The notes: generated from the sequence alone by a model not told the origin. A DNA stretch of 64,000 bases from Dendrobates tinctorius (GCF_039654945.1 NW_027361697.1:55366001-55430000), one strand, 5' to 3'. Positions 9,331-62,991 are shown, counted from the stretch's first letter. Numbers and translations are program-made.

Positions 9331-10373
9331 ACAGCTCCTGGCACACTCTTGGACAAATGGTGGTACCATTGGTTCCACCACCCATTATAATTCCATTTTT
9401 TCATCAGCTGCATATTATTCACATAATTATCGATTCTGCCATATTCATAATTCCATGAGCTTTCCTTCTGGGTTTTGAAATTTCAAATGTTGAGTGTAAA
9501 TATGTCCAAATGTGACATTGACAACAATAGTTGCTGTCCATACAGGGGTTATAGTAACTAAATGTAACAAACTGCAAACAACTATTGTGCCAGAAATAGG
9601 AATAATGTTTGCATTATGATGTTATAGTTTGGCTTTCCTTTGTCTGTATTGTAAGCTGTAGCTTCTGGGTTTTCTCGCCGAACTGATCAAGTGAAGTCAG
9701 GACCTGGAATCCACAGGGAAATCCACAGAGTAAATCTATACAGACAGTCTGATGCTTGCTATGTGCAGCAGACTGGAGAAGGCCATTATCTGCACATACT
9801 GATATGGAAGCACAATCAGCTGGTGGGAGCGAAATGAAAACCTGCTACATTGTGTAGCTATACAGCGAAGGCCGATTCACACCTGAGGTCCTAAACGGGA
9901 CAAAAAGAATTTATGTGAAAACCAGAAACGATGCACAACTCATGGAGATGGAAGCAGACGTGCACCACTTATTATTGCGCCCAATTCTGTGTGGGGGCTG
10001 GCCGCCTGAATGTGTCACGTTATAAATGGGGGAAACTAAATCTCTGCTGGAACAGATGTCGCTGACCGCTCCTGCCAGTGATTCAGCGGCCTCCGCTGAC
10101 GTCACATGGAAAGAGGTGGCTTCACATGCACTCTGCTCTATTGACGGGGCATGACTGTAGACATCATGCTGATTGACAGTCGGCTCCCTACTAACTGTGG
10201 GGAACCAGCTGTCAGTAATGTCGGCAAGTCATGCCCAGTTGACAGTAGACTGGAAGAAGAAGAGATGCTCAGTTGACGTGGTGGAGCAGCTGAATCGCTG
10301 GCAGAAGTGCTCGGTGATCACTCTTGAGCCGATGCCAGATCAAATTATTATAATATGCATAGTATAATTTTTT

Positions 10374-13336
<2,963 letters not shown>

Positions 13337-13505: not shown

Positions 13506-14995
13506 ATCAAACTGTCCCACTTAGGAAGCAACACTGATTGACAATCAATTTCACATGCTGTTGTGCAATTGGAATAGACAACAGATGGAAATTATTGGCA
13601 ATTATCAAGACACCCTCAATAAAGGAGTGGTTCTGCAGGTGGGGACCACAGGCTACATCTCAGTACCAATGCTTTCTGGTTGATGTTTTGGTCACTTTTG
13701 AATGTTGGTTGTGCTTTCACACTCGTGGTAGCTCAGCTACTCACGCAAGTTGCTCAGGTAGCACAGCTCATCCAGAATGGCACATCAATGCAAGCTGTGG
13801 CAAGAAGTTTGTGGTGTCTGTCAGCGCAGTGTCCAGAGGCTGGAGGCACTACCAGGAGACAGGCCAGTACACCAGGAGACGTGGAGGGGGCCGTAGGAGG
13901 GCAATAACCCAGCAGCAGGGCCGCTACCTCAGCCTTTGTGCAAAGAGGAACAGGAGGAGAACTGCCAGAGCTCTGCAAAATGACTTCCAGCAGGCCACAA
14001 ATGTGCATGTGTCTGCCCAAACGGTTAGAAACTGACTCCATGAGGATGGTCTTAGTGCCCAACGTCCACAGATGGGGGTTGTGCTCATAGCCCAACACTG
14101 TGCAGGACGCTTGGCATTTGCCACAGAACACCAGGATTGGCAAATTTGCCACTGGCGCCCCTGTGCTCTTCACAGATGAAAGCAGGTTCACACTGAGCAG
14201 ATGTGACAGAGTCTAGAGATGTCGTGGAGAGTGATCTGCTGCCTGCAACAACCTTCAGCATGACCGGTTTGGCAATGGATCAGTAATGGTGTGGGGTGGC
14301 ATTTCTTTGGAGGGCTGCACGGTGTTGGGCTGTGAATACAACCCCCATCTCTGGACGTCAGGCACTCATATCATCCTCATGGAGTAGGTTTCTAACTGTT
14401 TGTGCAGACACATGCACATTTGTGGCCTGTTGGAGGTCATTTTACAGGGCTCTGGCAGTGCTCCTCCTGTTCCTCCTTGCACAAAGGCGGAGGTAGCGGT
14501 CCTGCTGCTAGGTTGTTGCCCTCCTACAGCCCCCTCCACGTCTCATGGTGTACTGGCCTGTCTCCTGGTAGCGCCTCCAGCCTCTGGACACTACGCTGAC
14601 AGACAGCAAACCTTCTTGCCACAGCTTGCATTGATGTGCCATCCTGGATGAGCTGCACTACCTGAGCCACTTGTGTGGCTTGTAGACTCCATCTCATGCT
14701 ACCACGAGTGTGAAAGAACAACCAACATTCAAAAGTGACCAAAACATCGGCCAGAAAGAATTGGTACTGAGATGTGGTCTGTGGTCCCCACCTGCAGAAC
14801 CACTCCTTTATTGAGGGTGTCTTGATAATTGCCTATAATTTCCATCTGTTGTCTATTCCATTTGCACAACAGCATGTGAAATTGATTGTCAATCAGTGTT
14901 GCTTCCTAAGTGGAAAGGTTGATTTCACAGAAGTTTGATTTACTTGAAGTTATATTCTGCTCTTTAAGTGTTCCCTTTATTTTTTTAGAGCAGTG
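13506..14995. mobile_element. Fold-back Tc1 derivative made of two inverted 5' halves
   Basis: 13506-14106 is the reverse complement of about 14315-14922; both arms encode the same decayed transposase N-terminus; intact CACTGCTC terminus only at 14995. Confidence 0.88.
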
Positions 14996-15011: not shown

Positions 15012-15048
<37 letters not shown>

Positions 15049-15051
15049 ATA

Positions 15052-16652
15052 CAGTGGGGCAAAAAAGTATTTAGTCAGTCAGCAATAGTGCAAGTTCCAC
15101 CACTTAAAAAGATGAGAGGCGTCTGTAATTTACATCATAGGTAGACCTCAACTATGGGAGACAAACTGAGAAAAAAAAATCCAGAAAATCACATTGTCTG
15201 TTTTTTTTTCATTTGATTTGCATATTATGGTGGAAAATAAGTATTTGGTCAGAAACAAGCAATCAAGATTTCTGGCTCTCACAGACCTGTACTTCTTCTT
15301 TAAGAGTCTCCTCTTTCCTCCACTCATTACCTGTAGTAATGGCACCTGTTTAAACTTGTTATCAGTATAAAAAGACACCTGTGCACACCCTCAAACAGTC
15401 TGACTCCAAACTCCACTATGGTGAAGACCAAAGAGCTGTCAAAGGACACCAGAAACAAAATTGTAGCCCTGCACCAGGCTGGGAAGTCTGAATCTGCAAT
15501 AGCCAACCAGCTTGGAGTGAAGAAATCAACTGTGGGAGCAATAATTAGAAAATGGAAGACATACAAGACCACTGAATCTCCCTCGATCTGGTGCTCCACG
15601 CAAAATCCCACCCCGTGGGGTCAGAATGATCACAAGAACGGTGAGCAAAAATCCCAGAACCACGCGGGGGGACCTAGTGAATGAACTGCAGAGAGCTGGG
15701 ACCAATGTAACAAGGCCTACCATAAGTAACACACTACGCCACCATCGACTCAGATCCTGCAGTGCCAGACGTGTCCCACTGCTTAAGCCTGTACATGTCC
15801 GGGCCCGTCTGAAGTTTGCTAGAGAGCATTTGGATGATCCAGAGGAGTTTTGGGAGAATGTCCTATGGTCTGATGAAACCAAACTGGAACTGTTTGGTAG
15901 AAACACAACTTGTCGTGTTTGGAGGAAAAAGAATACTGAGTTGCATCCATCAAACACCATACCTACTGTAAAGCATGGTGGTGGAAACATCATGCTTTGG
16001 GGCTGTTTCTCTGCAAAGGGGCCAGGACGACTGATCCTGGTACATGAAAGAATGAATGGGGCCATGTATCGTGAGATTTTGAGTGCAAACCTCCTTCCAT
16101 CAGCAAGGGCATTGATGATGAAACATGGCTGGGTCTTTCAACATGACAATGATCCAAAGCACACCGCCAGGGCAACGAAGGAGTGGCTTTGTAAGAAGCA
16201 TTTCAAGGTCCTGGAGTGGCCTAGCCAGTCTCCAGATCTCAACCCTATAGAAAACCTTTGGAGGGAGTTGAAAGTCCGTGTTGCCAAGCGAAAAGCCAAA
16301 AACATCACTGCTCTAGAGGAGATCTGCATGGAGGAATGGGCCAACATACCAACAACAGTGTGTGGCAACCTTGTGAAGACTTACAGAAAACGTTTGACCT
16401 CTGTCATTGCCAACAAAGGATATATCACAAAGTATTGAGATGAAATTTTGTTTCTGACCAAATACTTATTTTCCACCATAATATGCAAATCAAATGAAAA
16501 AAAAACAGACAATGATTTTCTGGATTTTTTTTTCTCAGTTTGTCTCCCATAGTTGAGGTCTACCTATGACGTAAATTACAGACGCCTCTCATCTTTTTAA
16601 GTGGTGGAACTTGCACTATTGCTGACTGACTAAATACTTTTTTGCCCCACTG
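15052..16652 (+). mobile_element. Tc1 (DD34E) transposon, transposase 15418-16438 with one frameshift near 15575
   Basis: CAGTGGGGCAAAAAAAG...TTTTTTGCCCCACTG about 200-bp TIRs, TA flanks; MVKTKELSKDTR..., [22 protein letters not shown]. Confidence 0.95.
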
Positions 16653-16686
16653 TATATATACACACATATACACACACACATACACA

Positions 16687-16807: not shown

Positions 16808-18379
16808 TGCCTACAAGTAGTATTCAACCCCCTGCAGATTTAGCAGGTTTACACATTCGGAATTAACTTGGCATTGTGACATTTGGACTGTAGATCAGCC
16901 TGGAAGTGTGAAATGCACTGCAGCAAAAAAGAATGTTATTTCTTTGTTTAATTTTTTTTTAAATTGTGAAAAGTTTATTCAGAGGGTCATTTATTATTCA
17001 ACCCCTCAAACCACCAGAATTCTGTTTGGTTCCCCTAAAGTATTAAGAAGTATTTCAGGCACAAAGAACAATGAGCTTCACATGTTTGGATTAATTATCT
17101 CTTTTTCCAGCCTTTTCTGACTATTTAAGACCCTCCCCAAACTTGTGAACAGCACTCATACATGGTCAACATGGGAAAGACAAAGGAGCATTCCAAGGCC
17201 ATCAGAGACAAGATCGTGGAGGGTCACAAGGCTGGCAAGGGGTACAAAACCCTTTCCAAGGAGTTGGGCCTACCTGTCTCCACTGTTGGGAGCATCATCC
17301 GGAAGTGGAAGGCTTATGGAACTACTGTTAGCCTTCCACGGCCTGGACAGCCTTTGAAAGTTTCCTCCCGTGCCGAGGCCAGGCTTGTCCGAAGAGTCAA
17401 GGCTAACCCAAGGACAACAAGGAAGGAGCTCCGGGAAGATCTCATGGCTGTGGGGACATTGGTTTCAGTCAATACCATAAGTAACGTACTCCACCGCAAT
17501 GGTCTCCGTTCCAGACGAGCCCGTAAGGTACCTTTACTTTCAAAGCGTCATGTCAAGGCTCGTCTACAGTTTGCTCATGATCACTTGGAGGACTCTGAGA
17601 CAGACTGGTTCAAGGTTCTCTGGTCTGATGAGACCAAGATCGAGATCTTTGGTGCCAACCACACACGTGACGTTTGGATGGATGGCACTGCATACGACCC
17701 CAAGAATACCATCCCTACAGTCAAGCATGATGGTGGCAGCATCATGCTGTGGGGCTGTTTCTCAGCCAAGGGGCCTGGCCATCTGGTCCGCATCCATGGG
17801 AAGATGGATAGCACGGTCTACCTGGAGATTTTGGCCAAGAACCTCCGCTCCTCTATCAAGGATCTTAAGATGGGTCGTCATTTCATCTTTCAACAAGACA
17901 ACGACCCAAAGCACACAGCCAAGAAAACCAAGGCCTGGTTCAAGAGGCAAAAAATCAAGGTGTTGGAGTGGCCTAGTCAGTCTCCTGACCTTAACCCAAT
18001 TGAAAACTTGTGGAAGGAGCTCAAGATTAAAGTTCACATGAGACACCCAAAGAACCTAGATAACTTGGAGAAGATCTGCATGGAGGAGTGGGCCAAGATA
18101 ACTCCAGAGACCTGTGCCGGCCTGATCAGGTCTTATAAAAGACGATTATTAGCTGTAATTGCAAACAAGGGTTATTCAACAAAATATTAAACTTAGGGGT
18201 TGAATAATAATTGACCCACACTTGTATGTTTAAGATTTATTAAAATTTAACTGAGCAACATAACTTTTTGGTTTGTAAGATTTATGCATCTGTTAATAAA
18301 TCCTGCTCTTGTGTGAAGTTTGAAGGCTCTAACTTATTTGCATCTTATCAAACCTGCTAAATCTGCAGGGGGTTGAATA
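16805..18379 (+). mobile_element. Tc1 transposon, right TIR runs into the assembly gap
   Basis: CAGTGCCTACAAGTAGTATTCAACCCCCTGCAGATTTAGCAGGTTT left end; its reverse complement reappears at 18350-18379. Confidence 0.93.
17171..18190 (+). CDS. Tc1 transposase, uninterrupted ORF, DD34E
   Basis: MGKTKEHSKAIRD paired-like HTH; WSDETK; QQDNDPKH followed by E exactly 34 residues after the D (NPIE). Confidence 0.92.
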   Translation: MGKTKEHSKAIRDKIVEGHKAGKGYKTLSKELGLPVSTVGSIIRKWKAYGTTVSLPRPGQPLKVSSRAEARLVRRVKANPRTTRKELREDLMAVGTLVSVNTISNVLHRNGLRSRRARKVPLLSKRHVKARLQFAHDHLEDSETDWFKVLWSDETKIEIFGANHTRDVWMDGTAYDPKNTIPTVKHDGGSIMLWGCFSAKGPGHLVRIHGKMDSTVYLEILAKNLRSSIKDLKMGRHFIFQQDNDPKHTAKKTKAWFKRQKIKVLEWPSQSPDLNPIENLWKELKIKVHMRHPKNLDNLEKICMEEWAKITPETCAGLIRSYKRRLLAVIANKGYSTKY

Positions 18380-18529: not shown

Positions 18530-18607
18530 CGGGGCTCTACACTCAGCTTATATATATATAAAGCTGAGTGTAGAGCCCCGCCCATTCTGCATAACCACAT
18601 TCACTAT

Positions 18608-18960
18608 AATATCACACATCATCCCGTCAGTCAGAGCCACCGGACTACTACCCCTAATATCCCCCATCATCCTGTCAGCCAGAGCCAACGGACAACTACC
18701 ACTAATATCCCACATCATCCCGACAGCCAGAGCCACCGGACTACTACCTCTAATATCCAACATCATTCCTTCAGCCAGAGCCACCGGACAACTACCACTA
18801 ATATCCCACATCCCGTCAGCCAGAGCCACCGGACTACTACCCCTAATATCCAACATCATTCCTTCAGCCAGAGCCACCGGACAACTACCACAAATATCCC
18901 ACATCCCGTCAGCCAGAGCCACCGGACTACTACCCCCAATATCCCACATCATCCTGTCAG
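18608..18960. repeat. Minisatellite, 45-48-bp unit, about 7 copies
   Basis: TAATATCCCACATCATCCCGTCAGCCAGAGCCACCGGACTACTACCCC repeats. Confidence 0.92.
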
Positions 18961-19650
18961 TCTGGGGTCAGAACCAGAGCGCTAAGTGGAACGTTCCTAA
19001 CTTCCATACCTTTAAGAGAGGCCTTGTGTCAGAACCAGAGCACTGAGTGGATTTGCCCTGACTTCCATGCCAATGATCCCTTTAATAGAAGCCTGGGGTG
19101 AGAATCAGAGCGCTGAGGGATTTACCATAACTTCCATACAGGAGATCCCTTTACGAAGAGGCCTGGGGTCAGTACCAAAGTGCAGAGTGGATTTGTCCTC
19201 ACTTCCATACCGGGGATCCCTTTAAGAGGGGCCTTGGGTCAGAACCAGAGCGCTGAGTGGATTTCCACTGACTTGCATACGAATGATTCCTTTAATAGAA
19301 CACTGGGGTCAGAATCAGAGCGCTGAGGGATTTGCCCTAACTTCCATACAGGAGATCCCTTTAAGAGAGCCTGGAGTCAGTACCAGAGAATTTGAAGGCA
19401 ATTATCCTGACTTCCATTCTGGAGATCCATTTAAGAAAGGCCTGGGGTCAGTACCAAAGCGCAGAGTAGATTTGCCCTAAATTCCATACCAATGATCCCT
19501 TTAAGAGAAACTGGGGTCAGAACCACAGAGCTGAGTGGAACGGTCCTAACTTCCATACCGGAGATCCCTTTAAGAGGGTCCTGGGGTCAAGACCAAAGCG
19601 CTGGATGAATTTGCTTTGACTTCCATACCAATGATCCCTTTAAGAGGGAA
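18961..19650. repeat. Minisatellite, about 70-bp unit, about 10 copies
   Basis: CTGGGGTCAGAACCAGAGCGCTGAGTGGATTTGCCCTGACTTCCATACC...GATCCCTTTAAGAG repeats. Confidence 0.9.
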
Positions 19651-20778
19651 GATGTGCCTATATGATGGAGGATGTGTGATATGTAAATGGTTACAGGAGG
19701 GGGGGGGATTCATTTCTGTCATGTGCTCTCTGCTCCTTTTTGGGGGGCAGACAATGGCTGGGAGCTTATGTTTCCAGGGATGCTAGATTTCTCCTACCAT
19801 GTCAGAGTCTGCTGAGGTGTTGTCAAGTGGGAAAACTTGCTCATACCAACCAATCATAGCTCGGCTTCTTTTAACCAGCTCTGTTGAAATGAAAGATGCT
19901 TCGTGATTGGTTGGTGATACACACACACATTCAGTATATATAATTATTTATATAGCACCATTGATTCCATGGTGCTGTACATAAGAAGGGGGTTACATAC
20001 AAATTACAGATATCACTTACAGTAAACAAACTTACAATCACAGACTGATACAGAGGGGAGAGGACAGTGCCCTTTTGGGCTTACATGCTACAGCATGGTG
20101 GGGAAGGAGACAGTAGGTTGGGGGGGGTTGCAGCATTTCCATGTTGGTTGAGGTGATATCTCCAGTAGTGGTGAGGAGGTAGTGGGGTCATTACAGGCTG
20201 TAGGCTTTCTTGAAGAGGTGGGTTTTTAGATTCCGTCTGAAGGATCCGAATGTGGTTGATAGTCGGACATGGTGGGGCAAAGAATTCCAGAGGATGGGGG
20301 CTATTCGGGAGAAGTCTTGGAGGCGGTTGGGTGAGGAGCAAATAAGTGTGGAGGACAGAAGGAGGTCTTGGGAGGATCAGAGATTACGTGAGGGAAGGTA
20401 TCGGGAGATTAGTTCAGAGACAGGTTATAGATGGCTTTGTAGGTCAGTATTAGTTATTTGAACTGGATACGCTGAAGGAATGGAAGCCAGTGAAGAGATT
20501 TGCTGAGGGGAGAAGCGGAGGAGTAGCGAGGAGAGAGATGGATTTGTCGGACAGCCGAGTTAAGGATGGACTGGAGAGGTGCGAGGGTGTTAGCAGGGAG
20601 ACCACAGAAAAGGATGTTAAAAACATATGTGACATGCACAAGTGTGAACAAGTCAGTAAGACAATGCTCACACCACCCAATGGCTGAAACACAACAAAAG
20701 AACACAAAATGACAAATTTGCAAAAATACTCTGCAGTAAAAACATGACAATAATCAGCAAGTGCTGTATAACAAATAC

Positions 20779-20859
20779 AGGGCATTTAGTCGATACGTTT
20801 TTTGCAAAAAATGTATACCAAGCCGCTTCACCACGTCACGGTAACCCTTCACGAAGCAG
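20779..20859 (-). ncRNA. Putative HDV-like self-cleaving ribozyme (A1)
   Basis: P1 CTGCTTC/GAAGCGG, P2 AGGGTT/ATGCCCT (one bulge), P3 ACC/GGT, L3 GTGACGT, P4 ATAC-A-T6-GC-A6-C-GTAT, J4/2 A-C-T-A-A. Confidence 0.62.
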
Positions 20860-21192
20860 TCCCTATCTAATGTATTTAAAACCTGAACATGTGAACAGTG
20901 TCTAAATGAACAGGATACAGACAGGCGCCTCCTAGTATATGGGCTTGTGGTGTAAGACAGCTCATTTATGTGCATGTCACACAGGAGAGGGGTGCGGTCT
21001 CCCAAACCATGCTTAGCAAGGAAAAACGGATTAAAAACATATGTGACATGCACAAGTGTGAACAAGTCAGTAAGACAATGCTCACACCACACAATGGCTG
21101 AAACACAACAAAAGAACACAAAATGACAAATTTGCAAAAATACTCTGCAGTAAAAACATGACAGTAATCAGCAAGTGCTGTATAACAAATAC

Positions 21193-21273
21193 AGGGCATT
21201 TAGTCAATACGTTTTTTGCAAAAAATGTATACCAAGCCGCTTCACCACGTCACGGTAACCCTTCACGAAGCAG
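21193..21273 (-). ncRNA. Putative HDV-like self-cleaving ribozyme (A2)
   Basis: Near-identical tandem copy of A1. Confidence 0.62.
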
Positions 21274-22728
21274 TCCCTATCCGTGACGTGGTGAAGCGGC
21301 TTGGTATACATTTTTTGCAAAAAACGTATAGACTAAATGCCCTGTATTTGTTATACAGCACTTGCTGATTACTGGACGTGCAGCTCCAGGAGTTTGGAAA
21401 CGAATGGGAGCAGCAATATTCGGCGATAGCTGGACATAGCGGTTGGGTCGAGGGTTGGCTTTTTAAGGATAGGCGTGATTGTATATATGTTTTATAACAT
21501 AACAAAAGTGAGTGCTTCATTGCTGTCAGGAGTTCTATAGTCATTGTATAAAACATAATTTTATGGAGTCATACAGCCAGGGAGGAGGAGAGTAGATGAG
21601 CCCATGGTGTATTTGGAGACCGTGTTTATTTAAAGGTGTGTGCGGCATGACAGTGCTTGCAGGCACAGATGACGTGTTCTGAGATCGGGGAACTGAACAT
21701 AGATAATATCCTGGCAGACTATGTGATAATGGGATAGTTCATTATTATGTAGTGCAGCACATATACTATTCTATATGGTAACCTCTATGCAGTATTTGGC
21801 CCTTTAGGCTGTGTTCACATGTTGCAGCCACATAAATATCATGTTTTGCTTTTGATAAGTGCTAAAAGCAGCTTCATCATTAATACAATGTACATCCATT
21901 GCGCTGCAAAATCAAGTTATTTGCTATCCCTTTGCAGATCGCTTGGGATCCAACTGCTGGATCTCTCAGCGATCTTGAAATTGGTGTACTGAAATCCTGT
22001 GAGCTCTGCGGTCCAATCCTGAATGAAGCAGAGATACACAGGCATGACCTCCGCTCCATTCACTGCCTATGAGACTGTACTCCGCAGCCCCACAGATAAT
22101 GGATGGACCTGAATGCACACCTCTGCGCCATTTAGCAAGAGACCAGTCAATCACCTGGAGCTGCAATCGTGTAGTCAGACTCTGGTTCATGCTGCCCGTG
22201 ACTTGGGCCACCTGAATCAGCCAACAGGTTCCCTTTAAAGCACAATAGCCATCATTTATCAAGTGTAGCAGTTTGTATGCCATTCCAGATGACGTGTGTA
22301 CTGGAGTAAAATGCACCAAATTTATAAAGAAAAGTGAGCCCCTTAATTAATTTTGAGTATATTTTAGCTGCCATGCACCACCGCAAGAAATGTATGTGTG
22401 TGTCAGAAATTATGATGAATTTGTCAAGTATGCTCAGTCACGCCCCATTTTCCCACTTTTCGAAAAGTCAGTGATGTGGCCGAAACTGGTATTAAAATGT
22501 AAAAATGTTGCAATATTTTTGAGCAACTATGAGTTTCAGAAAAAAATTTACAAAATTTCAAGTAGTTTAACTCCAGGAAACTGGAAAAACTGATGAATCG
22601 GGTTTGATGAATATTACTATAGTAATAAGTAACACTGTATAGAAAGTTACTGTGTGCAGACGGCGACAACACTCTGAAATGATACCATGATCGTGGTGAT
22701 CATCAAAGTATCTTTGCATGCAAATAAA

Positions 22729-22814: not shown

Positions 22815-23821
22815 ATATATGTTTGTGTGTGTGTATGTCCGGGATTGGCATCCGCACCGTTGCAGTTACAGCCACAAAATTTTGCACAGTCACACGTCTG
22901 GACCCCGAGAGCGTCATAGGCTATGTTGTGAGGCAAAATTTTAACCCCGCGCATTCTAATTCACCAAACAATTTTGCCCCTATTTACATAATGGGGAAAA
23001 AGTGAAAGGAAAAGTGTTGGAGGCAAATTGGCAGCTGCCAGATGTGAACAAGGGGGGACTTAAAGAATGAGAGCGATGGCGCCAAAGAGTATATACCGTA
23101 CAGTTGCTAAGGTGGGGCCCTGACATGAGATACTCACCACACACGGGATATGAGCACACACACACAAAATGCGCCACACACTACCATGTGCTTCAACACA
23201 TATACCACCCTCAGCACACATTTCACCACACATACACCAACCTCGCCACATAAAAGTCGAAACACAAAAGTTGCCACTCAAAACTCATCACGCTGTCCCA
23301 GAGCTGTTTAAAAGATGAAAAATGAGCTGTGATTGGTTGCTATCAGCAACAGTTTTCTTTGTAGACAGTTGTGGTAACTGAGGCCTATTATTCTTATCAT
23401 TTCTATGGTGTTATCGTCCTTCTGTAAAGCTGGAAATAACACAATTTATTACCGTGCCAACACAGACCACCCTCTGACACAGACTGCAGGGTGAGCCCAG
23501 TATCACACAGGACAGGATTAGATACACAGCTCAGCAGTCAGTATCACACAGAATAGGATTAGATACACGGCTCACTAGTCAGTATCACACAGGATAGGAT
23601 TAGATACACAGCTCAGCAGACAGTATCACACAGAATAGGATTAGATACACGGCTCAGCAGACAGTATCACACAGAATAGGATTAGATACACGGCTCAGCA
23701 GTCAGTATCATACAGGATAGGATTAGATGCACAGTTTTTATGTGCAATATAATCATTATAATTTGTTATAACTATCCACAGTTGGTTACTATACCCAGGC
23801 AACGCCGTGCTCATCAGCTAG
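22729..23821 (+). mobile_element. Non-autonomous Helitron-like element (possibly composite)
   Basis: A|TC start, (GT)n near the 5' end, subterminal hairpin and CTAG|T end; no TSD. Confidence 0.65.
23498..23735. repeat. Minisatellite, about 41-bp unit, about 6 copies
   Basis: CAGTATCACACAGAATAGGATTAGATACACGGCTCAGCAGT repeats. Confidence 0.92.
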
Positions 23822-32254: not shown

Positions 32255-33442
32255 AGAAGTGGGCAGCAACTAACAGAATGGTTTTTAACAGGGAGAAATG
32301 CAAAGTACTACATCTGGGCAATAAAAATGAAAAAAGCATATACAGAATGGGAGGAATAGGGCTAAGTGACAGCACATGTGAAAAAGACTTGGGTATACTA
32401 ATAGATCACAGACTGAATATGAGTCAACAGTGTGATGCAGCAGCAAAAAAGGCAAATGCAATTCTAGGATGTATTAACAGAAGCATACAGTCTAGATCAC
32501 GTGAAGTCATTATTTCCCTCTACTCCTCTTTGGTCAGACCTCATCTGGAATATTGTGTCCAGTTTTGGGCACCACATTTTAAAAAAGACATCAACAAACT
32601 GGAGCAAGTTCAGAAAAGAGCGACCAGAATGGTGACCGGTCTGCAAACCTGTCTTATGAGGAAAGGTTGCAGGATTTGGGAATGTTTAGTTTGCAAAATA
32701 GAAGACTGAGAGGAGACTTAATAGCTGTCTACAAATATCTAAAGGGCTGTCACATTGTAGAAGGATCAACTTTATTCTCATTTGCACAAGGAAAGACTAG
32801 AAGCAATGGGATGAAACTGAATGGGAGGAGACACAGATTAGATATTAGAAAAAACTTTTTGACAGTTAAGGTACTGTCACACTTAGCGATGTACCAGCGA
32901 TCCCGACCAGCGATATGACGCGGTCAGGATCTCTGGTACATCGCTAAGTGGTCGCTAGTGAGCTGCCACACAGGCAGATCTCACCAGCGACATCGCTGGG
33001 GACGGGGGTCGCTACTTACCTGTCACACCAGGCGATCCTGCGTCCTCCCGCCCGGCTCCACGCGTCGCTCGTCTTCACAGCAGGAAGCGCCGCAGGAAGC
33101 TGACGACGAGAAACAGTCCAGCCTGTTCTCGCGCGATCAGCGATAACCAGCGGGGGAGTCGGTCGTAGGTAAGTATCAAACACAGCGATATCGCTAGCAA
33201 TATCGCTATAACGTCACAAGTTATAGCGATATTGCTAGCGATATCGCTTAGTGTGACATGCCCTTTAGAGTGATCAATGAGTGGAACAGGCTGCCACGAG
33301 AAGTGGTGAGTTCTCCTTCAATGGAAGTCTTCAAACAGAGGCTGGACAGACATCTGACTGGGATGATTTAGCGAATCCTGCTTTGAGCAGGGGGTTGGAC
33401 CAGATGGCCCAGGAGGTCCCTTCCAACTCTACGATTCTATGA
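32255..33442 (+). mobile_element. 5'-truncated CR1 LINE (copy B), near-identical to copy A, interrupted by a MITE
   Basis: FNREKCKVLHLG...RPHLEYCVQFW...RRLRGDLIAVYKYL; ATTCTATG tail. Confidence 0.93.
32869..33264. mobile_element. PIF/Harbinger-type MITE inside CR1 copy B
   Basis: AGGTACTGTCACACTTAGCGAT...ATCGCTTAGTGTGACATGCCCT termini, TTA duplication; CR1 frame resumes afterwards. Confidence 0.85.
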
Positions 33443-34141
33443 GTCAATCATTTATATACACCACCTGCTTGGTTCCATTGATCTCCTTTCTCTGGGTCTA
33501 TAAAGCCAAAAGTGTCAAAGAGGGGGGATGGAGATAGGGAGAAACCAAGCAGGTGGATATAAATGATTGGTCCCGCCATGAAGCACTGAGTGGCAGGACT
33601 TGGTTTGAACAGTCGCTCTGTGCTGACAGAGTGCCTTTAAACGACAAACCTCCTCCAATTTATTACAGTGTTAAGTATGGCCAGCACATGGATTGTACAC
33701 TGATGTCATCTGTGTACCGACAGTGATTTTCAGAGACAATTACACTAGTATGTGTATAGATTGTTCTATCCATGAAAACCAGATAGAAACACATACCCAT
33801 TATTGTTAAGGGGCTGTTCACATGTACCTGTTTTTTTATGCAGGCAGTTTGTCTGCAAAACAAATCAGAGACACGTCAGATTTTGATCCCTGTCATGGAA
33901 AGAACCTTACCCATACCTAGTGTTAGTTTAATGGTCCGTGAAAAACACAGATAAAAAAACATACGTGAAAAACAGTTGTCTACATTGTGCATTAGACAAG
34001 GACAACATCAGTGCCAACAACTAATGCATCTACTGTGTAGCACAGGGGGCCCCAACCTGCGGCTTGCGGGCCCGTGATGTGCGGCTCGCGGCTGTCTGCC
34101 AGCTTGGTGCATTAGCACCAGATGTTACAAACAGCTATTAA

Positions 34142-50533: not shown

Positions 50534-53425
50534 CATTGATTTCAATTGAGTCAGTCAAATCTGCAGCAAAAACGCGGGTGTAAAAAGGTTTGCGTTTTTG
50601 CTGCGTATTTACTGCTTATTTGCTGCAGATTTGCTGCCAAAAACGCTGCAAATTGTCAAAGGAAATTATGTCAGAAGGAGGAAGTGTGTGTGGGCGGAGA
50701 ATGTGTGTCTCTGTCTGTACCCATGCAACGAACAGCCCATAGTGATTGTACTTAGGCGTCGTCTGATGGGACTACTACTCCCATCCGGCTACGTCTTTTG
50801 TCACATATAATAGACAGCATGAGCCGATGATGGGAGAATAGTCTCATCATCCGGCACATGAGTTCAATTGTAAAAAAAAAAAAAAAAAAAAATTAATTAC
50901 ATACATATTCACATACAAAATACATACTCACAGATCACCTAATCCCCGAAGCCCGGATTTCCTGCAAACAATCAAAAATGGTAAACCAACATATACTCGC
51001 CTTTCCGCCATAGTCCATTTAATACCGAGTGTCCCATGACAGATCTCATGCTGTATCACTGTGCTGCCGTGTTAGTTCACCGGAGTTCAGCAGCTGATCA
51101 GCTCCGGTTCTCGCGCAGCGGTGCCCTAAGTGAGAGCACCGGAGCTGATGAATTTCGGTGAACTCGAACAGTAGCGATGCACTGCAGGAGCGATTACCTC
51201 CTGTCTATCACCGGAGGCTGGATAGAGCGGTGTGTTACACGTGAGATCGCCGGTGGACACTCAGTAATAAGTGGACTACGTCGGACAGGATAGTATTATA
51301 TGTTTTATTTTTTTATTTTTTTTTTATTATTTGCAGAAGACGAGGGTGTCGGGGATTAGGCATTCAGTATGGTAACGTCTCTCCATTACTAACCTGTGGG
51401 CTTGATGTCACCTGACAACACAAAGGTGACATCAACTCCACAAATGTGAACTCCACTTGCGACTCCTACAGGGCAAGTGGGAAGATCGAGGCTAAGTGCC
51501 AGAATTGGTATGTAATGATATTATGATCTTCAATAGAGAATGAAAAAGAAGAGGTTAAACAAGGAAATTACATCACAAATTCTTTTTTTAGCTCTATGGA
51601 TTTAAAAAAAAAAAAATGCATGAAAAAGTGCATGCAAAAACATAGAAGCCTATCTTCATAATTTTTATATAGGAGTTACTAAAACACATGAGTTCAGTTG
51701 CACGGCTATGTCCATAACTTTCATAGCGAATATAGTGAGTACCATAGACATGTGCGGCCTCTTCTCTATTTACTCTCTGCCTGGATGCGATGGCATGAGC
51801 TCGTCACACCGTTTGGTTCACAGGACCCCTGTTCATTACGTTATTGAGTCCCACATCTATCAGTAGATAAGTCACAATGGATAGTCATAGATAATTTCCC
51901 GGCTGTCTAACAATTGTCTTTGTCTGTGATTTCCCTTTGCGTTGAGTAGTAAATCCTGGTTCAGCAAATGAGCAAGTTGTGCTAATATTAAGCATATGAA
52001 AATGTATTCACAATCACAGCACTGCTTGCAGAATTGAATGGGTTGTCCACTACTCACCACCCCCCCCCCCCCCCCCCGTAAAATAAATACACTTTATACT
52101 CCCCTTCTGTGCTGGCATTGTTCCAGTGGTGTCGGCACTAGTTCTTCTAGAGCTCTCAAGATATTGTCACACAATGGCAGCGGCCGCCTCACTCTCCTTT
52201 GCTATGGGCATAATTGATATCCAGAGGAGTTGAGGGACCAGCTGCAGCTCTGACTTCTTCCAGATGACATTTACGTCCAAAGGAGAGTGAAGGGACCACT
52301 GATTGACCCCAGGGATTGTGTGACAACATAATGTCAAGGAAGCCCTGGGAGAGCCAGTGCCAACGCCATTGGATTTGCGCTGGCATCGGAGGTGAGTTCA
52401 ACTGTTATTTTTCTAGAGGGAACATGGGGATTGAGAAGGTGATGTCTGAGTTGTGGACAACCTCTTTAATGTAGCCCACATACACTTGTAAAATGATCTG
52501 CCTGCGGGATCTTATGCAGTATATAGAATAGCAGCTAATTATACTGCACTATTACGGTAATTAAGAACACGACGAAACACAGTAAATATGTTTACTTGAC
52601 TTCCACTTCAGGTAGTCGTCATTATATGGCTGCAGAAAAATCTATTTAATATGACGTCAGACAAGTGGATACAGGTTGTGAAATGGCCTTCACTGATAAT
52701 TTTATACCTGTAGTGAAAACGAAAAGGATTTGTGCTTATTACATTCAGAGACCTTCATTCCCTGGTATGATCATTTGGAGGATAAAAAAGTCCAGTTTCT
52801 GACACGTCTCTGCTTATAGAGTCGGGGTCCTGATCAGTGGATCCATGTGGCTTAGTAGGGCGTGTAGTCAGAGATTGTACAGATTAAGAGCAGCTCCTCT
52901 AATCTGATATTGTCTTTTTAAGTGTTTTATTTCTTCAGTGCAAGTCTCCTTATTTAGGAGTCTTTGGAATAAGGAATCTCCAGATTTCACATGATAAACT
53001 ACATACATGAAAGGAGTATACTCTTCTCAAGTTCGACTGCTAGGCCCACACTTCCCAATGCCGGCTAAGGAAGTTGGCTACCACACGGTAGCAACATGGA
53101 CGACTGACCAGGATCTTGCTAATCCTTTTGATCTACTCTACTGTGTACTTACTTTAAACATATACGTAAGAGTGACTATAAGAACGTTTTTTCCACTTGA
53201 TATTAGATTCAGCCTTCTAATACTGCAGATCTCTGATGCTAATGACACATCCTCTCTGATCCACGGTTCTCCAGCGCCATCAGGTCATTGACCATTACCA
53301 ACTGAAATTAAACACATGGTCCATGCACACAGTGAACAACACAGTACAACAAACATATAAAAATACTCTGTTGTAAAAAAAAAGTAACAGTAAACAGCAA
53401 GTGCTAGTAAAAAGATAACAAAACA

Positions 53426-53509
53426 GGGTATTTGGTTGAAACGTTTTTTTGTAAAAAATGTATACTTAGCCGCTCTACCAAACATCAAGGTATACCCATA
53501 TCAGAGCAG
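53426..53509 (-). ncRNA. Putative HDV-like self-cleaving ribozyme (B1)
   Basis: P1 CTGCTCT/AGAGCGG, P2 GGGTAT/ATACCC, P3 ACC/GGT, L3 TTGATGTTT, T6/A7 P4, J4/2 A-C-C-A-A. Confidence 0.62.
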
Positions 53510-53857
53510 TCCGTAACCGATGTACGTATTTAAAAACCTGACCATGTGTATGGTACCTATATGAGCAGGATGCAGAAAGGTAATGTCCGGGGTGGACACG
53601 CTGTGGAAGACGGCTTATATGTGCACCGCCCACAAGGGAGGGGTGAGACCTCCCTAATCTTGCAGAAACAAGAAACCAATTGAAAATAAACACATGGGCC
53701 ATGCACACAGTGAACAAGTCTGTATGACAGGGATCACACCACCAAAAGACTGAAACACAGGAAAACACAGTACAACAAACGTATAAAAATACTGTTGAAA
53801 AAAAAAAAAAAAAAAGGTAACAGTAAACAGCACGTGCTAGTAAAAAGATAACAAAAC

Positions 53858-53942
53858 GGTATTTGGTTGAAACGTTTATTTGCAAAAAATGTATACTAAG
53901 CCACTCTACCAAACGTCAAGGTATGCCCCCATATCAGAGCAG
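53858..53942 (-). ncRNA. Putative HDV-like self-cleaving ribozyme (B2)
   Basis: Tandem copy; L3 TTGACGTTT; P2 has one mismatch; the array ends at the predicted cleavage site. Confidence 0.55.
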
Positions 53943-56900
53943 AGTATTTTTATACGTTTGTTGTACTGTGTTTTTCTGTGTTTCATTGACCACAACCAGT
54001 CCACTGTCAGCACGTAGAGGGAAATGATGTATCCTCATAGGGCTGGATGGGTCACGCCTGGAATAAATATTCATGGTGCACAGGGTTGTTTTTCTATTCT
54101 CCTCCAGTGATCTGTGCAGATAACAGACCTGGTAAGAGTCGGACAGGTGACGTTTTGGAGAAACCTGATAATCTACTTTGTATTTGGCTGATGAATACAA
54201 GAGTTTCATGGAGTAAATTGCTAGAAGCCTAAGTCCTGCACTGTGCTCGCTGCACCCGAGCCGCCTCCAGCAGATCTGCCGCCATTCCGGGAATGGTAAT
54301 CGCAGCCAATCTGAGGAGATGATTGTGAATTATTAAGTTGGCTTCTTCCTGGCTAATGCGCTTGCAGCTCCGGCATGGAAACACTTTTGCAGTCGTTCCT
54401 GTTGCCATTATAGATTTCATGCTCATCCGGGAGGCACTGTATCGAAATATATTATTCCTAAAAGCTGTGGACAGAGACTGCTGTGGTTTTCCATTGTTTC
54501 ACCAGCTGGTTTTTATTACATTGTCGAGGGGAATAACAGGATGTGAGCCGGGCTGTTTTGTGATGATTGGAGCCAGCTTATGTACTAGTTTTTCATCAGA
54601 AATTATTAACTTGGGGTCTGTGCCCATGATACAGATTTGTCACAAAACCTGATTGCAGCAAAGTGACAGAGTCCTGAAGTCTTGTACACATTGCTTATGC
54701 TGTGCAGAGTGAATTCTGCAGCATGGCAATTCTGTCAGTGTTTTTTGCTGCAGGTTTCACCCATACTAATGAATGGGGAAATTCTGCAACAAAAAAAAGC
54801 GTGTTTAAAAAAAAAAAAGCACATATTTTACTCGGGGTTTTTTTTTTTTGCCCCAAATACTTAGTTTGCACATTCTCTAATAGAGATTACTGCATTTTAT
54901 ACAGTAAGTTGACTCTTAAAGCCCAATTCGTTATTGAATTTGTGTGTTTTTTTTCATTTTGGCGTTTTTCATTTGTGCCTTCTTGTAATGACTCTTTTAT
55001 ATGCATTTCCCTGGTGTGTGTGTGTTTTTTATTTATTTTTTTAAGAGTTGTCCACTACTAGGACAACCTCTCTTCACTTCTCTGAGTGTTTTCCCCTGTT
55101 AAAATAAAAACATCTATATTCTCCTCCCGTGCCGGCGTCATTCCAGCGGTGTCAGCACTCACTTTCCAGGGCTCACATGAGGTTATGTCACGTGCGCCCA
55201 GTCAGCGGCAGTATCACTGTCCCCTTTTTCTCCTTCGCCTCATTGGGGGACACAGACCATGGGTGTTATGCTGCTGACAATAAGTAATACAAAGAAAGTT
55301 AGCTGCTCCTCTGCAGTATACACCCGCATGCTGGCTCCCAGAAAACCAGTTCTTACTTAGTGTCCGTATGTTAAAGCGGATGGTACAAGGAGGCAGTTGG
55401 TCCCTCTCCACCTCCCTATTAAAGGGATGGTGGATTGAGGGTTACCCCTTTACCTCTGCACCATCCAAGACCAGCAGCAGCAGGAGGACCTGCAACATAC
55501 CTGGTTTACCTGCCACCCGGCAGTTTCTCCGGGTATGTGCCAGGTCTGGAGGGCTCTTTTCAGGAGGTCTGGGGCGGCGCTGGCATAAGGAGGCTCATAC
55601 TGCAGCCGGGGGGGCACGACATCCGACCCCTTCTTGCGTTGGCCGGCACTGAAAAATTTAGCCCGCGGCTTCGGTCTACAAGAAGCGGCTCTGAGATTCT
55701 CGTTGGCCTTCTCGCTCTCCCCCACGACTGCCTCACGAGCTGGCATCCGGAAGCGGCTGCGGCATATTATCCGACGGCATTCAGCGCTGAGGACAGCGCT
55801 AATCCAAAATCCAACGGACTCAAGATCCGGGTAAGGAGGCGCTGCCCCCCCCCCCCCCCCCGCAGTACCTCCGGCAGAGAAATGAAGTAAGGGCAAAAGA
55901 AGAATAAAAAAAAAAAACTGTACACTTTTGCCCCAGTGACGGCATGTCTTTAGCTGGTTTTCTTTACGCAGAAATCTCCGTGTAACTGCAGGGGTGCCGC
56001 CATGTAAACTATTGCAGCACCAGTAAGCCTTTACAAACTGCAGTCACTTAAAATACTGTTCTGCCTACTGTGGTTAGAGTACTCACTGGTCTTAAAGGCG
56101 CATGACCAGTCTAGAGTCCCCAATTACAGTCTTCTTAATCCGCCAGTCACTTCTCGCCCACTGCGAGAGTGTCTTTGTTGATTCACGCCGACTATCTTGG
56201 ACTCAGGTGATGGGCAAGCGGCTCCAGTGGTACTTAAGTCCCACAAGCCGTCATACTATAGCGTACAGCATTTCTTTCCCCAAGGAGGAAAACGACTGTC
56301 CTCAGGGGCACAGCATCTGGGTAAGTGCTGCACATACAAATTACTCACATGCTTCCCCTTTTTAGTCAAAGTACTCTGCTGTACAACTTTGCAGGGCTAC
56401 GCTGCCTTACAGCTGCGCTGGTGTATACCTCTAGCATTCCCTGCAGTGTACAAACTATGCCGCTCTGTGTCACCTGTGATCCTAAACACGGCTTGTGACC
56501 CCTAATACGCTCAGGAGCCCTCCACTGTCACCAAGTCTGGTGTACTTAGTCCCCTCAAGTGGGCTTCGTCAATGTCACAATTCATGGCCTCTCTGGCCAA
56601 AGGCAGAGGGATTCCCCTCTTTAGATCGGCCAGCTTCCAGCTGACTGAGGTAGATGGATCCTCTCCTACAAGGGAGTCGTCTCCTTGCGGCCCCTGCTAG
56701 CCTTCTACAATCGTGCAAGCGTCTAGAAAAGGGATCCGTAGTACTCCTACTGAGCTATCATGTGTCTTGGCATCCGAGCTCCGCTGCTCGCTCTCTCTCA
56801 CCAGAGGTCTGTAGCGAACATGATTCTGAGTATGATTCGGAGGTTTACTGGCTCTGGTTCTGACAGTTTTCCAGAAACCGGCGGATTCACTTTCTTGAGG

Positions 56901-60092: not shown

Positions 60093-61989
60093 CATTGGGC
60101 CGGAAGTAGGGGGAAGGCTTTCTCTCTTCCTTTCCGCCTGGGCAAATATCTCCCCCAGTACATGGGTCCTAAATATAATCAAGGACGGCTTAAAAATAAA
60201 ATTCATCCGTCCGCCCAGGCATACCTTCATAATGACACCCAGAAGGAAAGCCCAAGAGCAACAGCTGGCCCTGGAGACGGAAGTCTTGGGACTAGTGAAA
60301 AAACAAGTCCTACAGGAAGTCCCAGTGCAAGAAGAAGGAAGGGGGTTCTACTCCCCCCTCTTCTTAATACAAAAACCAGATGGCTCTTGGAGAACCATTG
60401 TCAACCTGAGGAGACTCAATCAGTGGGTAGACAATTGCTCCTTCAAAATGGAGTCAATCAACACGGCCACAAAGATCCTGTCCCAGCATTGCCTCATGGC
60501 ATTGATAGACTTAAAAGATGCCTACTATCACATCCCAATTCATCGGGAGTATCAAAAATATTTGAGAGTAGCGCTCTATGTCCAGGGGCAGGTGAAACAC
60601 TACCAGTACGGATCCCTTCCATTTGGCCTGTCTACAGCCCCCAGAGTATTCACCAAAGTGATGGCCGAAGTAATGTCTTTTCTGCGTTCCAGGGACATAG
60701 TGATTGTCCCATACCTAGACGACTTTCTGGTAATAGGGAGGTCGGAGTCCCACTGCACACATCAAGTGAAGGAAGTGATAGCAATTCTAGTAGAACTAGG
60801 ATGGATAGTAAACATCCCCAAGTCAAGGCTAACCCCAGTAAAAGAGCAATCCTTCCTAGGGTTGATATTGGACTCCGAGTAACAACACTGCCTCCTACAA
60901 GAGAGCAAAGTGACCAAGATAAGGGGCCTAGCTCGCACAGCAATACAAAGGCCAAATATGACACTGAGGAACGCAATGTCCCTTTTAGGCTCGTTGACAT
61001 CATGCATACCCGCAGTAGCATGGGCGCAGTACCACTTAAGGCAACTACAGTGGGAAGTTCTGTCAGCACAGAAACAATTAAAAGGGCATTTAGAAGGCAA
61101 ACTATGTCTCTCAGTGGCTGTAAGAGATTCCCTGCTCTGGTGGACTGTAGAAAAGAATCTAACAGCCGGTGTCCCGTGGCAAAAACCAGTCGAGGACATC
61201 ATTACAACAGACGCGAGTGCCACAGGATGGGGAGCACACCTGAGATCCCACTCAATACAGGGGACCTGGTCCTCGCTAGAAAGGGATTACGGTTCAAATG
61301 TAAAAGAACTATGGGCAGTGGAAAAAGCCGTGAAACATTTCCTTCCCTTACTTCGGGGCCGCCACAACTGGGTCATGACGGACAATCAAGCAGTAGTAGC
61401 CTACATCAATCACCAGGGGGGAACAAGATCTCGGGGCCTCATGCAAATATCGGATCTACTCTTCCAGCTAGCAGAACAACATCTGTTATCCATCACAGCA
61501 CTGCACATAAAGGGGGCAGAAAATATCCATGCAGATTTCCTGAGTCGCAGGCACCTAAGACAAGGGGAATGGTCCCTAAACCCCCAAGTCTTCCAACAAA
61601 TAGTTCAGGCCTGGGGCAAACCAGAAATAGACCTGTTCGCTACCGCACACAACCGGAAGGTCAGGAAGTTCTGCTCACTAAACCCAAGGGAAAACCCCTT
61701 CGCAGTAGATGCCCTACAAATACCCTGGAAGTTCATCCTGGCCTATGCATTTCCCCCGATAACAATGATCCCAGTAGTGGTCAGGAAAATCGGGGAGGAT
61801 CGAGCGAGAATAATTCTTATAGCTCCGATTTGGCCGAGAAGGCCTTGGTTCTCCCTTCTGAGGCTTATGTCAGTGACAGATCCATGGATACTACCAGAGA
61901 TTCCAGACCTGCTCTCCCAGGGACCAGTGGTCCACTCTCAGGTGAAGGGCTTCCATCTAGCAGCCTGGAATTTGAGAGGGCGCTACTGA
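60091..61989 (+). pseudogene. DIRS copy 2 pol (RT-RNaseH-MT), one in-frame TAA at 60880-60882
   Basis: VGGRL, LPFGL, YLDD, TTDAS..GWG, DLFA...YAFPP. Confidence 0.92.
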
Positions 61990-62991
61990 GTCGCCAGGGA
62001 TTCTCTCCAGGGTTAGTCTCCACCCTGTTGAAAAGTAGGAAACCTATAACATCCCAAATCTACGGTAGAACGTGGAAAAAGTTCCTAGACTTCCTGGGGG
62101 AACCCTTGGGGGATGTAGCGCCACTGGGATCTATTCTAGAGTTCTTACAGTCGGGGCTACAACTGGGGTTAGCCACTAACACACTCAAAGTTCAAGTCTC
62201 AGCTTTGGGGGCCCTATATAACTGCAACTTAGCAGCCAATAGGTGGGTGTCCAGATTCATAAAGTCCTGTGGCAGGTCAAGGCCGGTCATTATCCAAAAG
62301 ATACCACCCTGGGACCTCAACCTAGTCTTAGAGGCCTTAACCAAAGACCCCTTTGAACCACTAATAGAACTGTCACCAAAGCTACTTACACTTAAAACTG
62401 TCTTCCTTAACATCAGCCCGAAGAGTCAGCGACATTCAAGCTCTGTCTATATGTCCTCCATATACACAGATCTTGGAGGACCGAGTGGTTCTAAGACCAG
62501 ACCCGGCCTATCTCCCCAAGGTAGTCCAAAAGTTTCATAGGACTCAGGAGATCTCCTTGCCATCTTTCTGTAACATTCCTAGAAACCCTGGGAAGCAAAA
62601 GTTCCATACATTAGATGTAAGAAGAGCCATATTACAATATATGTCAGTAACTAGTCAGTGGAGGAAAGATCAGTCCCTTTTTGTAGCCTTTCAGGGTAGT
62701 AGACAAGGGCACTGGGTAGCTAAGAGTACCATTGCCAGATGGATCAGGGAGGCCATTATGTTATCCTACTCCGCAAGTGGCGCTCCGGTTCCAGAAGGCA
62801 TCAAGGCTCACTCCACCAGAGCCGTGGCTACCTCCTGGGCAGAGAAGGCTAAGGTATCAATTGAAAAAATTTGTAAAGCCGCTACTTGGTCCTCACCTTC
62901 CACCTTTTTTAAGCACTACCGACTTGATCTGTCTTCCTCTACTGACCTAACCTTTGGTAGAAGGGTGCTGCAAGCGGTGGTCCCTCCCTAA
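60093..62991 (+). pseudogene. DIRS copy 2 tyrosine recombinase ORF with long overlap extension; frameshift near 62408
   Basis: ORFs 60162..62540 and 62473..62991; WDLNLVL, HSTR, ATW, KHY motifs. Confidence 0.9.

Follow-up and report, generated by a model that had tools for sequence, protein, structure and literature searches.

Published animal retrozymes carry type I hammerhead ribozymes and are derived from Penelope-like elements, and the metazoan retrozymes without long terminal repeats (LTRs), the non-LTR retrozymes, are tandem repeats of 150-450 bp with ribozymes of this same type (PMC7229834; bioRxiv 10.64898/2026.07.22.740005). PMC7761336 (citing PMC3308841) and PMC11331408 place ribozymes resembling that of hepatitis delta virus (HDV) at the 5' ends of coding non-LTR retrotransposons, or long interspersed nuclear elements (LINEs), including R2, RTE, L1Tc and others. 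Here, we describe a repeat of the frog Dendrobates tinctorius that has the layout of a retrozyme and may carry an HDV-type ribozyme in place of the hammerhead. Two diverged copies, locus A and locus B, lie in a window of 64,000 nt (GCF_039654945.1, NW_027361697.1:55366001-55430000; all positions are counted from the first letter of this whole stretch), and locus B is our main subject. With high confidence, we read locus B as one target-primed insertion, made by a tandem element that is non-autonomous, resembles a retrozyme and is of Penelope style. The 5' domain of its unit is predicted, at about even odds, to be a working HDV-type ribozyme.

Several described systems frame the comparison. In Penelope-like elements, units occur in partial tandem and the 5' end carries an inverted piece (PMC8557442), and their reverse transcriptase (RT) initiates at an internal stem-loop, not at the RNA 3' end (PMC11167929). 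Snap-back inverted sequence at 5' junctions has been documented in the target-primed reverse transcription of R2 (PMC11331408). The CPEB3 ribozyme has U20, C22, A23 and G25 in its L3 loop, a P1.1 helix of one G-C and one U-U pair, and a J4/2 of 4 nt (PMC4836649). A second P1.1 pair that is not Watson-Crick is also known as U:U in Ackermannviridae and as C:U in C. briggsae ribozymes (PMC4836649, PMC13635239), and weak P1.1 helices with U:U or C:U are found in fast natural HDV ribozymes (PMC13635239). At the cleavage site, a published HDV descriptor fixes the pair G1-Y35 (PMC6326823).

Evidence for an insertion comes from a perfect 10-bp target-site duplication (TSD), TCATTGACCA, which abuts both boundaries of the repeat at locus B (Table 1); by our own arithmetic, about 0.003 chance 10-mer matches would be expected in the flanks searched. 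Since the TSD stands at the exact ends of the repeat, which blastn and nhmmer also place there, we read locus B as one insertion extending over 53295-53982. A first-pass annotation, made from the sequence alone, had recognized the repeat at 53297-53985 and had assumed insertion by target-primed reverse transcription; the TSD agrees with the latter and shifts both ends slightly. It is made up of a full unit, a partial one on the 3' side and an inverted piece of 40 nt. Along the minus strand, the order is TSD, antisense piece, the full unit from 53942 to 53510, the partial unit from 53509 to 53295, and TSD. The minus-strand 5' end of the direct array falls at 53940-53942, inside a 3-nt CAG microhomology that forms nucleotides 1-3 of helix P1 of the candidate ribozyme; through it, the inverted piece joins P1 nucleotide 1. 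This boundary, already pointed out in the first-pass annotation, was seen again on direct reading, and a snap-back that used the CAG for priming would fit the inverted piece. The partial unit (B1) and the 5' part of the full unit (B2) are 86.6% identical at a spacing of 431 nt, B1 having an internal deletion of about 46 nt relative to B2 and to locus A. A run of 18 adenines in the full unit is the expanded form of a short run, which measures 9 nt in B1 but 5 nt at locus A. We take the 3' end of B1 to be the start point of reverse transcription. The insertion is fairly old, and the element is non-coding, with units of about 415-435 nt.

Locus A is a younger sister insertion with a 414-nt unit in 1.6 copies. 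Its tandem units are 99% alike, and it carries a 94-nt inverted piece, an antisense copy of positions 22-122. This piece is a textbook snap-back, its fold-back closing on a loop of 25 nt. The long inverted repeat also causes spurious high-scoring matches to plant microRNA models in Rfam. Loci A and B are 70-74% identical by blastn and co-linear across 335-404 nt, in keeping with the earlier description of B as a diverged, co-linear subfamily of the A repeat with a unit of about 433 nt; a unit length of about 415-435 nt is thus seen at two unlinked loci (direct reading of 52900-54400 and self-comparison of the window). In an nhmmer profile of 441 positions, the arrays end on the 3' side at 265 (A) and 270 (B), 5 positions apart, and on the 5' side at -8 (A) and +1 (B), 9 positions apart. 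By our arithmetic, the coincidence of the 3' ends has a chance of about 3-4%, and so does that of the 5' ends. The inverted piece sits at the same end of both loci and comes from different unit positions (about 146-195 in B, 22-122 in A), so the architectures, which had been described as the same, are alike in kind (a partial tandem with an inverted piece) and not in detail. No TSD was found at locus A, and a profile built from the A and B monomers detected no third copy in the window.

A purely DNA-level origin has to be considered at this point. An origin of this kind, as a small satellite or a segmental duplication that unequal crossing-over and local inversion have shaped, would need no RNA intermediate and would leave the fold without function; slippage or fold-back repair can yield both tandem units and inverted pieces, and B1 and B2 differ by 13%. 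Such an origin is hard to reconcile with a perfect 10-bp TSD exactly at the insertion ends, with two unlinked loci sharing a layout and nearly equal unit end points, with thousands of dispersed copies, and with compensatory changes in two helices, and we give it scarcely any credence.

The abundance of the family was assessed with Logan contigs from four public runs, aligned to 53200-54050 at a likeness of 80%. Word depth in run X12 reaches 1e5 in the repeat versus about 7 in the flanks, the matching contigs come from three species labels, and tandem joints of 427-435 nt in contigs show that tandem units occur elsewhere. As an order of magnitude, the family has 10^4 copies across this frog and its relatives. 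Opposite-strand joints at 53376-8 and 53938-40, the same as the locus B junction, were present in eight contigs of X12 and two of X2; recurring in at least 10 contigs, the B junction is multi-copy. Contigs of single-copy depth cross from flank to repeat on both sides (53200-53300 and 53990-54050) in X12 (organism C) and X10 (organism B). Such crossings under other species labels indicate that the insertion apparently occupies an orthologous site, which fits an old insertion. Two metagenome scans for further family members with conserved P4 patterns returned nothing in one case and four unrelated chance matches in the other.

Three observations favor a minus-sense RNA. Both loci have their inverted piece at one and the same end; P1 contains a U.G pair (and in B2 also a G.U), which on the plus strand would become A.C; and the monomer folds better in minus sense, with z = -2.8 against shuffles for both A and B and z = -1.3 for the plus strand (A only). 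If the plus strand were the RNA, the repeat would be an A-rich element resembling a short interspersed nuclear element, and the minus-strand fold would be irrelevant. The A18 run and the AC-rich stretches of the plus strand would suit this, as would the P4 palindrome, which makes a slightly better helix there (G.U in place of A.C). The A run, however, is internal rather than terminal and measures only 5-9 nt in A and B1, and the inverted pieces at the common end fit snap-back of a cDNA 3' end only if the sense is minus. Together with the lost P1 wobbles and the poorer folding, this makes a plus-sense element very unlikely.

We also considered the unit as a coding sequence. Stop-free minus-strand frames of 146 codons (B, 53478-53915) and 137 codons (A, 20757-21167) each span about one unit; the 414-nt A unit corresponds to 138 codons, one of them a stop. 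The A-B substitutions favor none of the codon positions (0.25/0.24/0.25), the phase is not kept in half of the alignment, and T makes up 38-41% of the strand; we therefore judged the frames to be a composition artefact of a T-rich strand and rejected this interpretation.

A conserved long hairpin near the array 3' end was found in independent minimum free energy (MFE) folds of A and B, and its stem of 13-14 bp is the only helix that the two folds have in common. In B, 53707-53694 pair with 53633-53620 and enclose the GGGAGG/CCTCCC hairpin at 53636-53654, which the first-pass annotation had singled out and which proves to sit atop this longer stem. Among 13 pairs of the stem, two are changed on both sides and one on one side. 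The arrays of both loci stop just 3' of its 5' arm.

The candidate ribozyme lies at the 5' end of the unit. An in-silico descriptor scan showed that a nested double pseudoknot of the HDV type, with a P1 of 7 bp, P2, a P3 of 3 bp, P1.1 and P4 in the canonical order, can be drawn in both copies of locus A (A1, A2) and in B1. B2 fails the descriptor at P2 alone, through a 2-nt deletion in P2'; its P1 has one extra G.U pair, and its L3 is intact (TTGACGTTT). P1 reads CTGCTTC/GAAGCGG in A versus CTGCTCT/AGAGCGG in B. RNAalifold, given the four rows, predicts P1 and P3 unprompted. In P1 it counts two double-sided changes, one from U-A to C-G and the other from C-G to U-A, and no broken pair; these are exactly the two compensatory pairs proposed at first pass. 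The scan likewise recovered other elements reported then: in B1, a perfect P2 (GGGTAT/ATACCC), P3 (ACC/GGT), the CT after P1' and the C-N-A-A before P2'. The broader proposal that the HDV fold is kept by compensatory change holds for P1; P2, P3 and P1.1 are invariant or show one-sided changes. A P1 in another register with G at +1 (GCUUCGU/GUGAAGC, then GG) can be drawn in A and was rejected, as it is not conserved in B.

The family-majority L3, taken from B2 (UUGACGU(UU)) and the majority letter at 53484, is UUGACGU. P1.1 consists of one Watson-Crick pair, between G (third L3 letter) and C (first J1/4 letter), plus U.U; this G-C is the reverse of the usual C-G, swapped on both sides, and is invariant across copies. 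J4/2 can be read in B as CAAA before UACCC or as CCAA before AUACCC, and in A as CUAA followed by AU.

Table 1. Positions of the features of locus B and of its sister insertion, locus A
Feature	Coordinates	Strand	Basis
TSD, left copy, TCATTGACCA	53285-53294	.	Exact 10-mer also at 53983-53992
Entire insertion B	53295-53982	-	blastn, nhmmer, TSD
B1, 3'-terminal partial unit	53295-53509	-	nhmmer: 53509-53299 to profile 1-270
HDV/CPEB3-like motif, copy B1	53425-53509	-	Descriptor scan; coordinates from sequence
B1 motif, 5' half	P1 53509-53503; J1/2 53502-53498; P2 53497-53492; P3 53491-53489; L3 53488-53480	-	
B1 motif, 3' half	P3' 53479-53477; P1' 53476-53470; J1/4 53469-53468; P4 ~53467-53438; J4/2 53437-53431; P2' 53430-53425	-	
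Full 433-nt unit, 5' part from B2, starting at P1 nucleotide 1	53510-53942	-	nhmmer: profile 1-441 to 53942-53510; junction read directly
Conserved long hairpin	53620-53707	-	Common to the separate MFE folds of the two loci
A18 run (U18 in the sense RNA)	53798-53815	+	TRF; alignment
HDV/CPEB3-like motif, copy B2	53857-53942	-	Alignments
Inverted 40-nt piece, plus strand in unit sense, positions ~146-195	53943-53982	+	blastn, nhmmer
TSD, right copy	53983-53992	.	Exact 10-mer match to left copy
Locus A, younger sister insertion, 414-nt unit, 1.6 copies	20617-21374	-	Self-comparison, blastn, nhmmer

Taken together, the layout and the motif suggest the following course of events. A multimeric minus-sense transcript would have been copied by target-primed reverse transcription, starting in a Penelope-like manner at an internal site defined by structure, and the cDNA would have run for about one and a half units to the RNA 5' end. 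There, its 3' end would have snapped back on the microhomology of 3 nt, and a further 40 nt would have been copied before the cDNA was joined to the target. Every unit would carry a CPEB3/HDV-like nested double pseudoknot at its 5' extreme, and the likeliest cause of the B array's start at P1 nucleotide 1 would be that the template had cleaved itself at this point, the internal site being left uncut. The element would then be a retrozyme in which an HDV-type ribozyme replaces the hammerhead. As a whole, a retrozyme-like insertion copied from a template cleaved by an HDV-type ribozyme is the best explanation we can offer, and we consider it evenly poised between right and wrong.

The value of the motif depends on how readily it arises by chance. 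The loose HDV descriptor matches about 43 places over both strands of the window (128 kb), so the fold alone is weak evidence. When U and CG are additionally required in L3, only the locus A copies remain in the window, and 14 dinucleotide shuffles give 0.86 matches per 128 kb; with the P1.1 pair required as well, the shuffles give 0.14 per 128 kb, and in the window the copies of locus A are again the sole matches. These chance figures are generous, because the sequence had been seen before the descriptor was tuned. Under the L3-letter criteria, B1 fails at a single point, a CpG-to-TpG change at 53484, where it has T versus C in most family copies. No Rfam ribozyme family matched the window at gathering cut-offs, or the two loci and their 100-nt pieces at E-values up to 10; the HDV, CPEB3 and drz covariance models in particular gave no match at E up to 10, 100-nt pieces included. 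Apart from the microRNA-model matches to the fold-back of locus A, Rfam returned nothing. These covariance models, being blind to pseudoknots, are known to miss divergent HDV-like members. No hammerhead core (CUGANGA-type box) occurs on either strand of the two loci, nor is there an Rfam hammerhead match, and with no such core in the units, no other known ribozyme accounts for the layout. Folding energies are of little help: nested folding of the 81-86-nt motif gives z of about 0 against shuffles, and the HDV-like nested part, taken together with the P2 duplex, comes to roughly the energy of the MFE structure, which neither supports nor refutes a ribozyme.

It may be, instead, that the same retroelement carries a structured 5' module that does not catalyze, such as a binding site for a mobilizing protein, a stabilizing 5' fold or a promoter-proximal element, and that its likeness to HDV and CPEB3 is a coincidence. 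The 5' ends near P1 would then reflect a transcription start within the unit, or a favored site of RT stopping or template switching. Besides the abundance of the loose fold, the absent Rfam matches and the unremarkable nested folding, several findings speak for such a module or against catalysis. The direct array of A begins 8 nt upstream of the predicted cut, and these 8 nt are templated, so no cleavage at that point had occurred in the A template; a pair of 5' ends at -8 and +1 resembles a fuzzy start site more than a single cut. All copies have C1-G and pair U2 with G, where HDV-like ribozymes are expected to have G1.U or G1-C. The younger subfamily A has GUGACGU as its L3, with G as the first letter and U second. 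The candidate catalytic C lies in neighboring columns, CU in A, CC in B and UC/UCAA in about 45% of the B-type depth; some C is present at the site in every variant, the column itself not being fixed. Covariation within the motif is confined to P1, and as P1 is a nested helix common to any hairpin model, it is not specific to the HDV fold. The best-conserved segment is the AU-rich P4, a helix that is dispensable in known HDV-like ribozymes. The recurrent B junction is fixed on both sides, so that one amplified composite copy would explain it as well as repeated cleavage. Two runs labeled 'RNA?' cover the unit and not the flanks, at a depth that follows a DNA-like run within about threefold; given this proportionality, trace DNA of a 10^4-copy repeat could account for the coverage. 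Finally, the one Penelope-like element studied in vitro could insert with no need of ribozyme cleavage, and it showed no RNA ends at the ribozyme site (PMC11167929).

Three points oppose a module of this kind. Requiring the canonical L3 letters and the P1.1 pair cuts chance matches to the low figure given above; L3 equals that of CPEB3 but for one letter, and this letter is compensated in J1/4; and the boundary of B coincides, to within 3 nt, with P1 nucleotide 1, which has a chance of about 1% per locus. We regard a non-catalytic module as a serious contender, somewhat short of an even chance. The first-pass proposal that the inserted cDNA was copied from a self-cleaved RNA fares accordingly: the start of B at P1 nucleotide 1 and the recurrence of its junction favor it, and the upstream start of A and a junction fixed on both sides do not. 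If the fold is non-catalytic, the locus is still a clean case of insertion in the Penelope style, in which a TSD, an RT start fixed at an internal site and a 5' junction formed by snap-back come together, and belongs to ordinary repeat biology.

Even with an ancestral HDV-type ribozyme, the two motif copies of locus B would probably be decayed and inactive now, to judge from their sequences, each bearing one disabling change: the L3 substitution in B1 and the loss in P2' of B2. Private changes at 53440, 53452 and 53467 also weaken P4 of B1. The unit of locus A, by comparison, is intact.

The remainder of the window contains further mobile elements. Overlapping long open reading frames (ORFs) at 811-5265 on the minus strand, with RVT_1 (E 5e-19), RNase H-like and LAP2alpha-like domains, belong to an LTR/DIRS-type retroelement unrelated to the repeat studied here, and a second set of long ORFs at 60162-62540, with RT-associated RNase H domains (E 4e-8), is an LTR-type retroelement remnant. 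Three ORFs for transposases of the Tc1/Sleeping-Beauty type (HTH_Tnp_Tc3_2, DDE_3) lie at 11446-12075, 15626-16438 and 17162-18190, and long inverted repeats at 13510-14920 and 15022-16682 surround the Tc1-type ORFs. Inverted repeat arms at 10363-11108 and 32309-33456, 97-99% complementary and about 21 kb apart, are either two young, opposite copies of one element or a large inverted duplication. Tandem arrays of a minisatellite kind, repeating every 45-48, 70/139 and 41 nt, occupy 18572-19646 and 23457-23775. As to an autonomous partner, the window offers only the LTR/DIRS-type RT and Tc1-type transposase remnants, which share no sequence with the unit, and neither a Penelope-type RT nor a GIY-YIG domain was found in it.

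Among known systems, the non-LTR retrozymes share several features with the frog element. Both have non-coding units of a few hundred nucleotides in short dispersed tandem arrays, low GC content, TSDs of more than 4 bp, abundance in amphibians, one candidate self-cleaving motif per unit and a Penelope-like insertion layout; here, the non-coding units measure 414 and 433 nt and are present in 1.6 copies, with tandem joints elsewhere and a 10-bp TSD in B. They differ in the ribozyme, since the frog units have no hammerhead core on either strand and their candidate is of the HDV class. With Penelope-like elements, both loci share the partial tandem, the inverted 5' piece and 3' ends at a nearly constant point (265 and 270 of 441). 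In contrast to those elements, the frog element has no ORF and no hammerhead, GIY-YIG and RT of that type are absent nearby, and its inverted pieces start away from the canonical 3' end, which makes them look like snap-backs rather than second, 5'-truncated copies of the Penelope kind.

LINEs with 5' HDV-like ribozymes have in common with the frog element a double pseudoknot at the 5' extreme of the retrotransposed RNA, full-length cDNA that begins at ribozyme nucleotide 1, and 5' junctions with snap-backs and microhomology. Their ribozymes, however, are single 5' modules of protein-coding elements, whereas the frog motif occurs in every unit of a non-coding tandem element and is atypical in its C1-G pair and swapped P1.1. 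To our knowledge, HDV-like ribozymes in retroelements are known only as such single modules of coding LINEs. In the collection of papers searched, those that name both HDV-like ribozymes and retrozymes report no HDV-type retrozyme in their titles, abstracts and some passages, and none turned up for Xenopus.

We tentatively propose, at a confidence a little below even, an undescribed class of frog retrozymes, with about 10^4 copies and a ribozyme of the HDV/CPEB3 type, not a hammerhead, whose active-site frame is non-canonical. The frame proposed for this class has C1-G37, a U.G wobble that has moved to pair 2, and a P1.1 pair in flipped orientation. If true, the retrozyme concept would extend to a second ribozyme class, and the family would let one see, in a natural setting, to what extent an HDV active site can accommodate C1-G together with the flipped P1.1; it would also show that G1.U37 is dispensable in nature.

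With the mammalian CPEB3 ribozyme, the frog motif shares U20, A23 and G25 of L3 (in the family-majority form), the composition of P1.1, a 4-nt J4/2 of the C-N-A-A type, a P1 of 7 bp and a P3 of 3 bp. CPEB3 has G1.U36 and C22-G37 where the frog motif has C1-G and G22-C37, and the Rfam CPEB3 model does not match the latter. CPEB3 is a single conserved intronic copy, whereas the frog motif belongs to a mobile repeat; if the proposed class is real, it would supply a mobile-element relative of, or source for, the vertebrate CPEB3 ribozyme.

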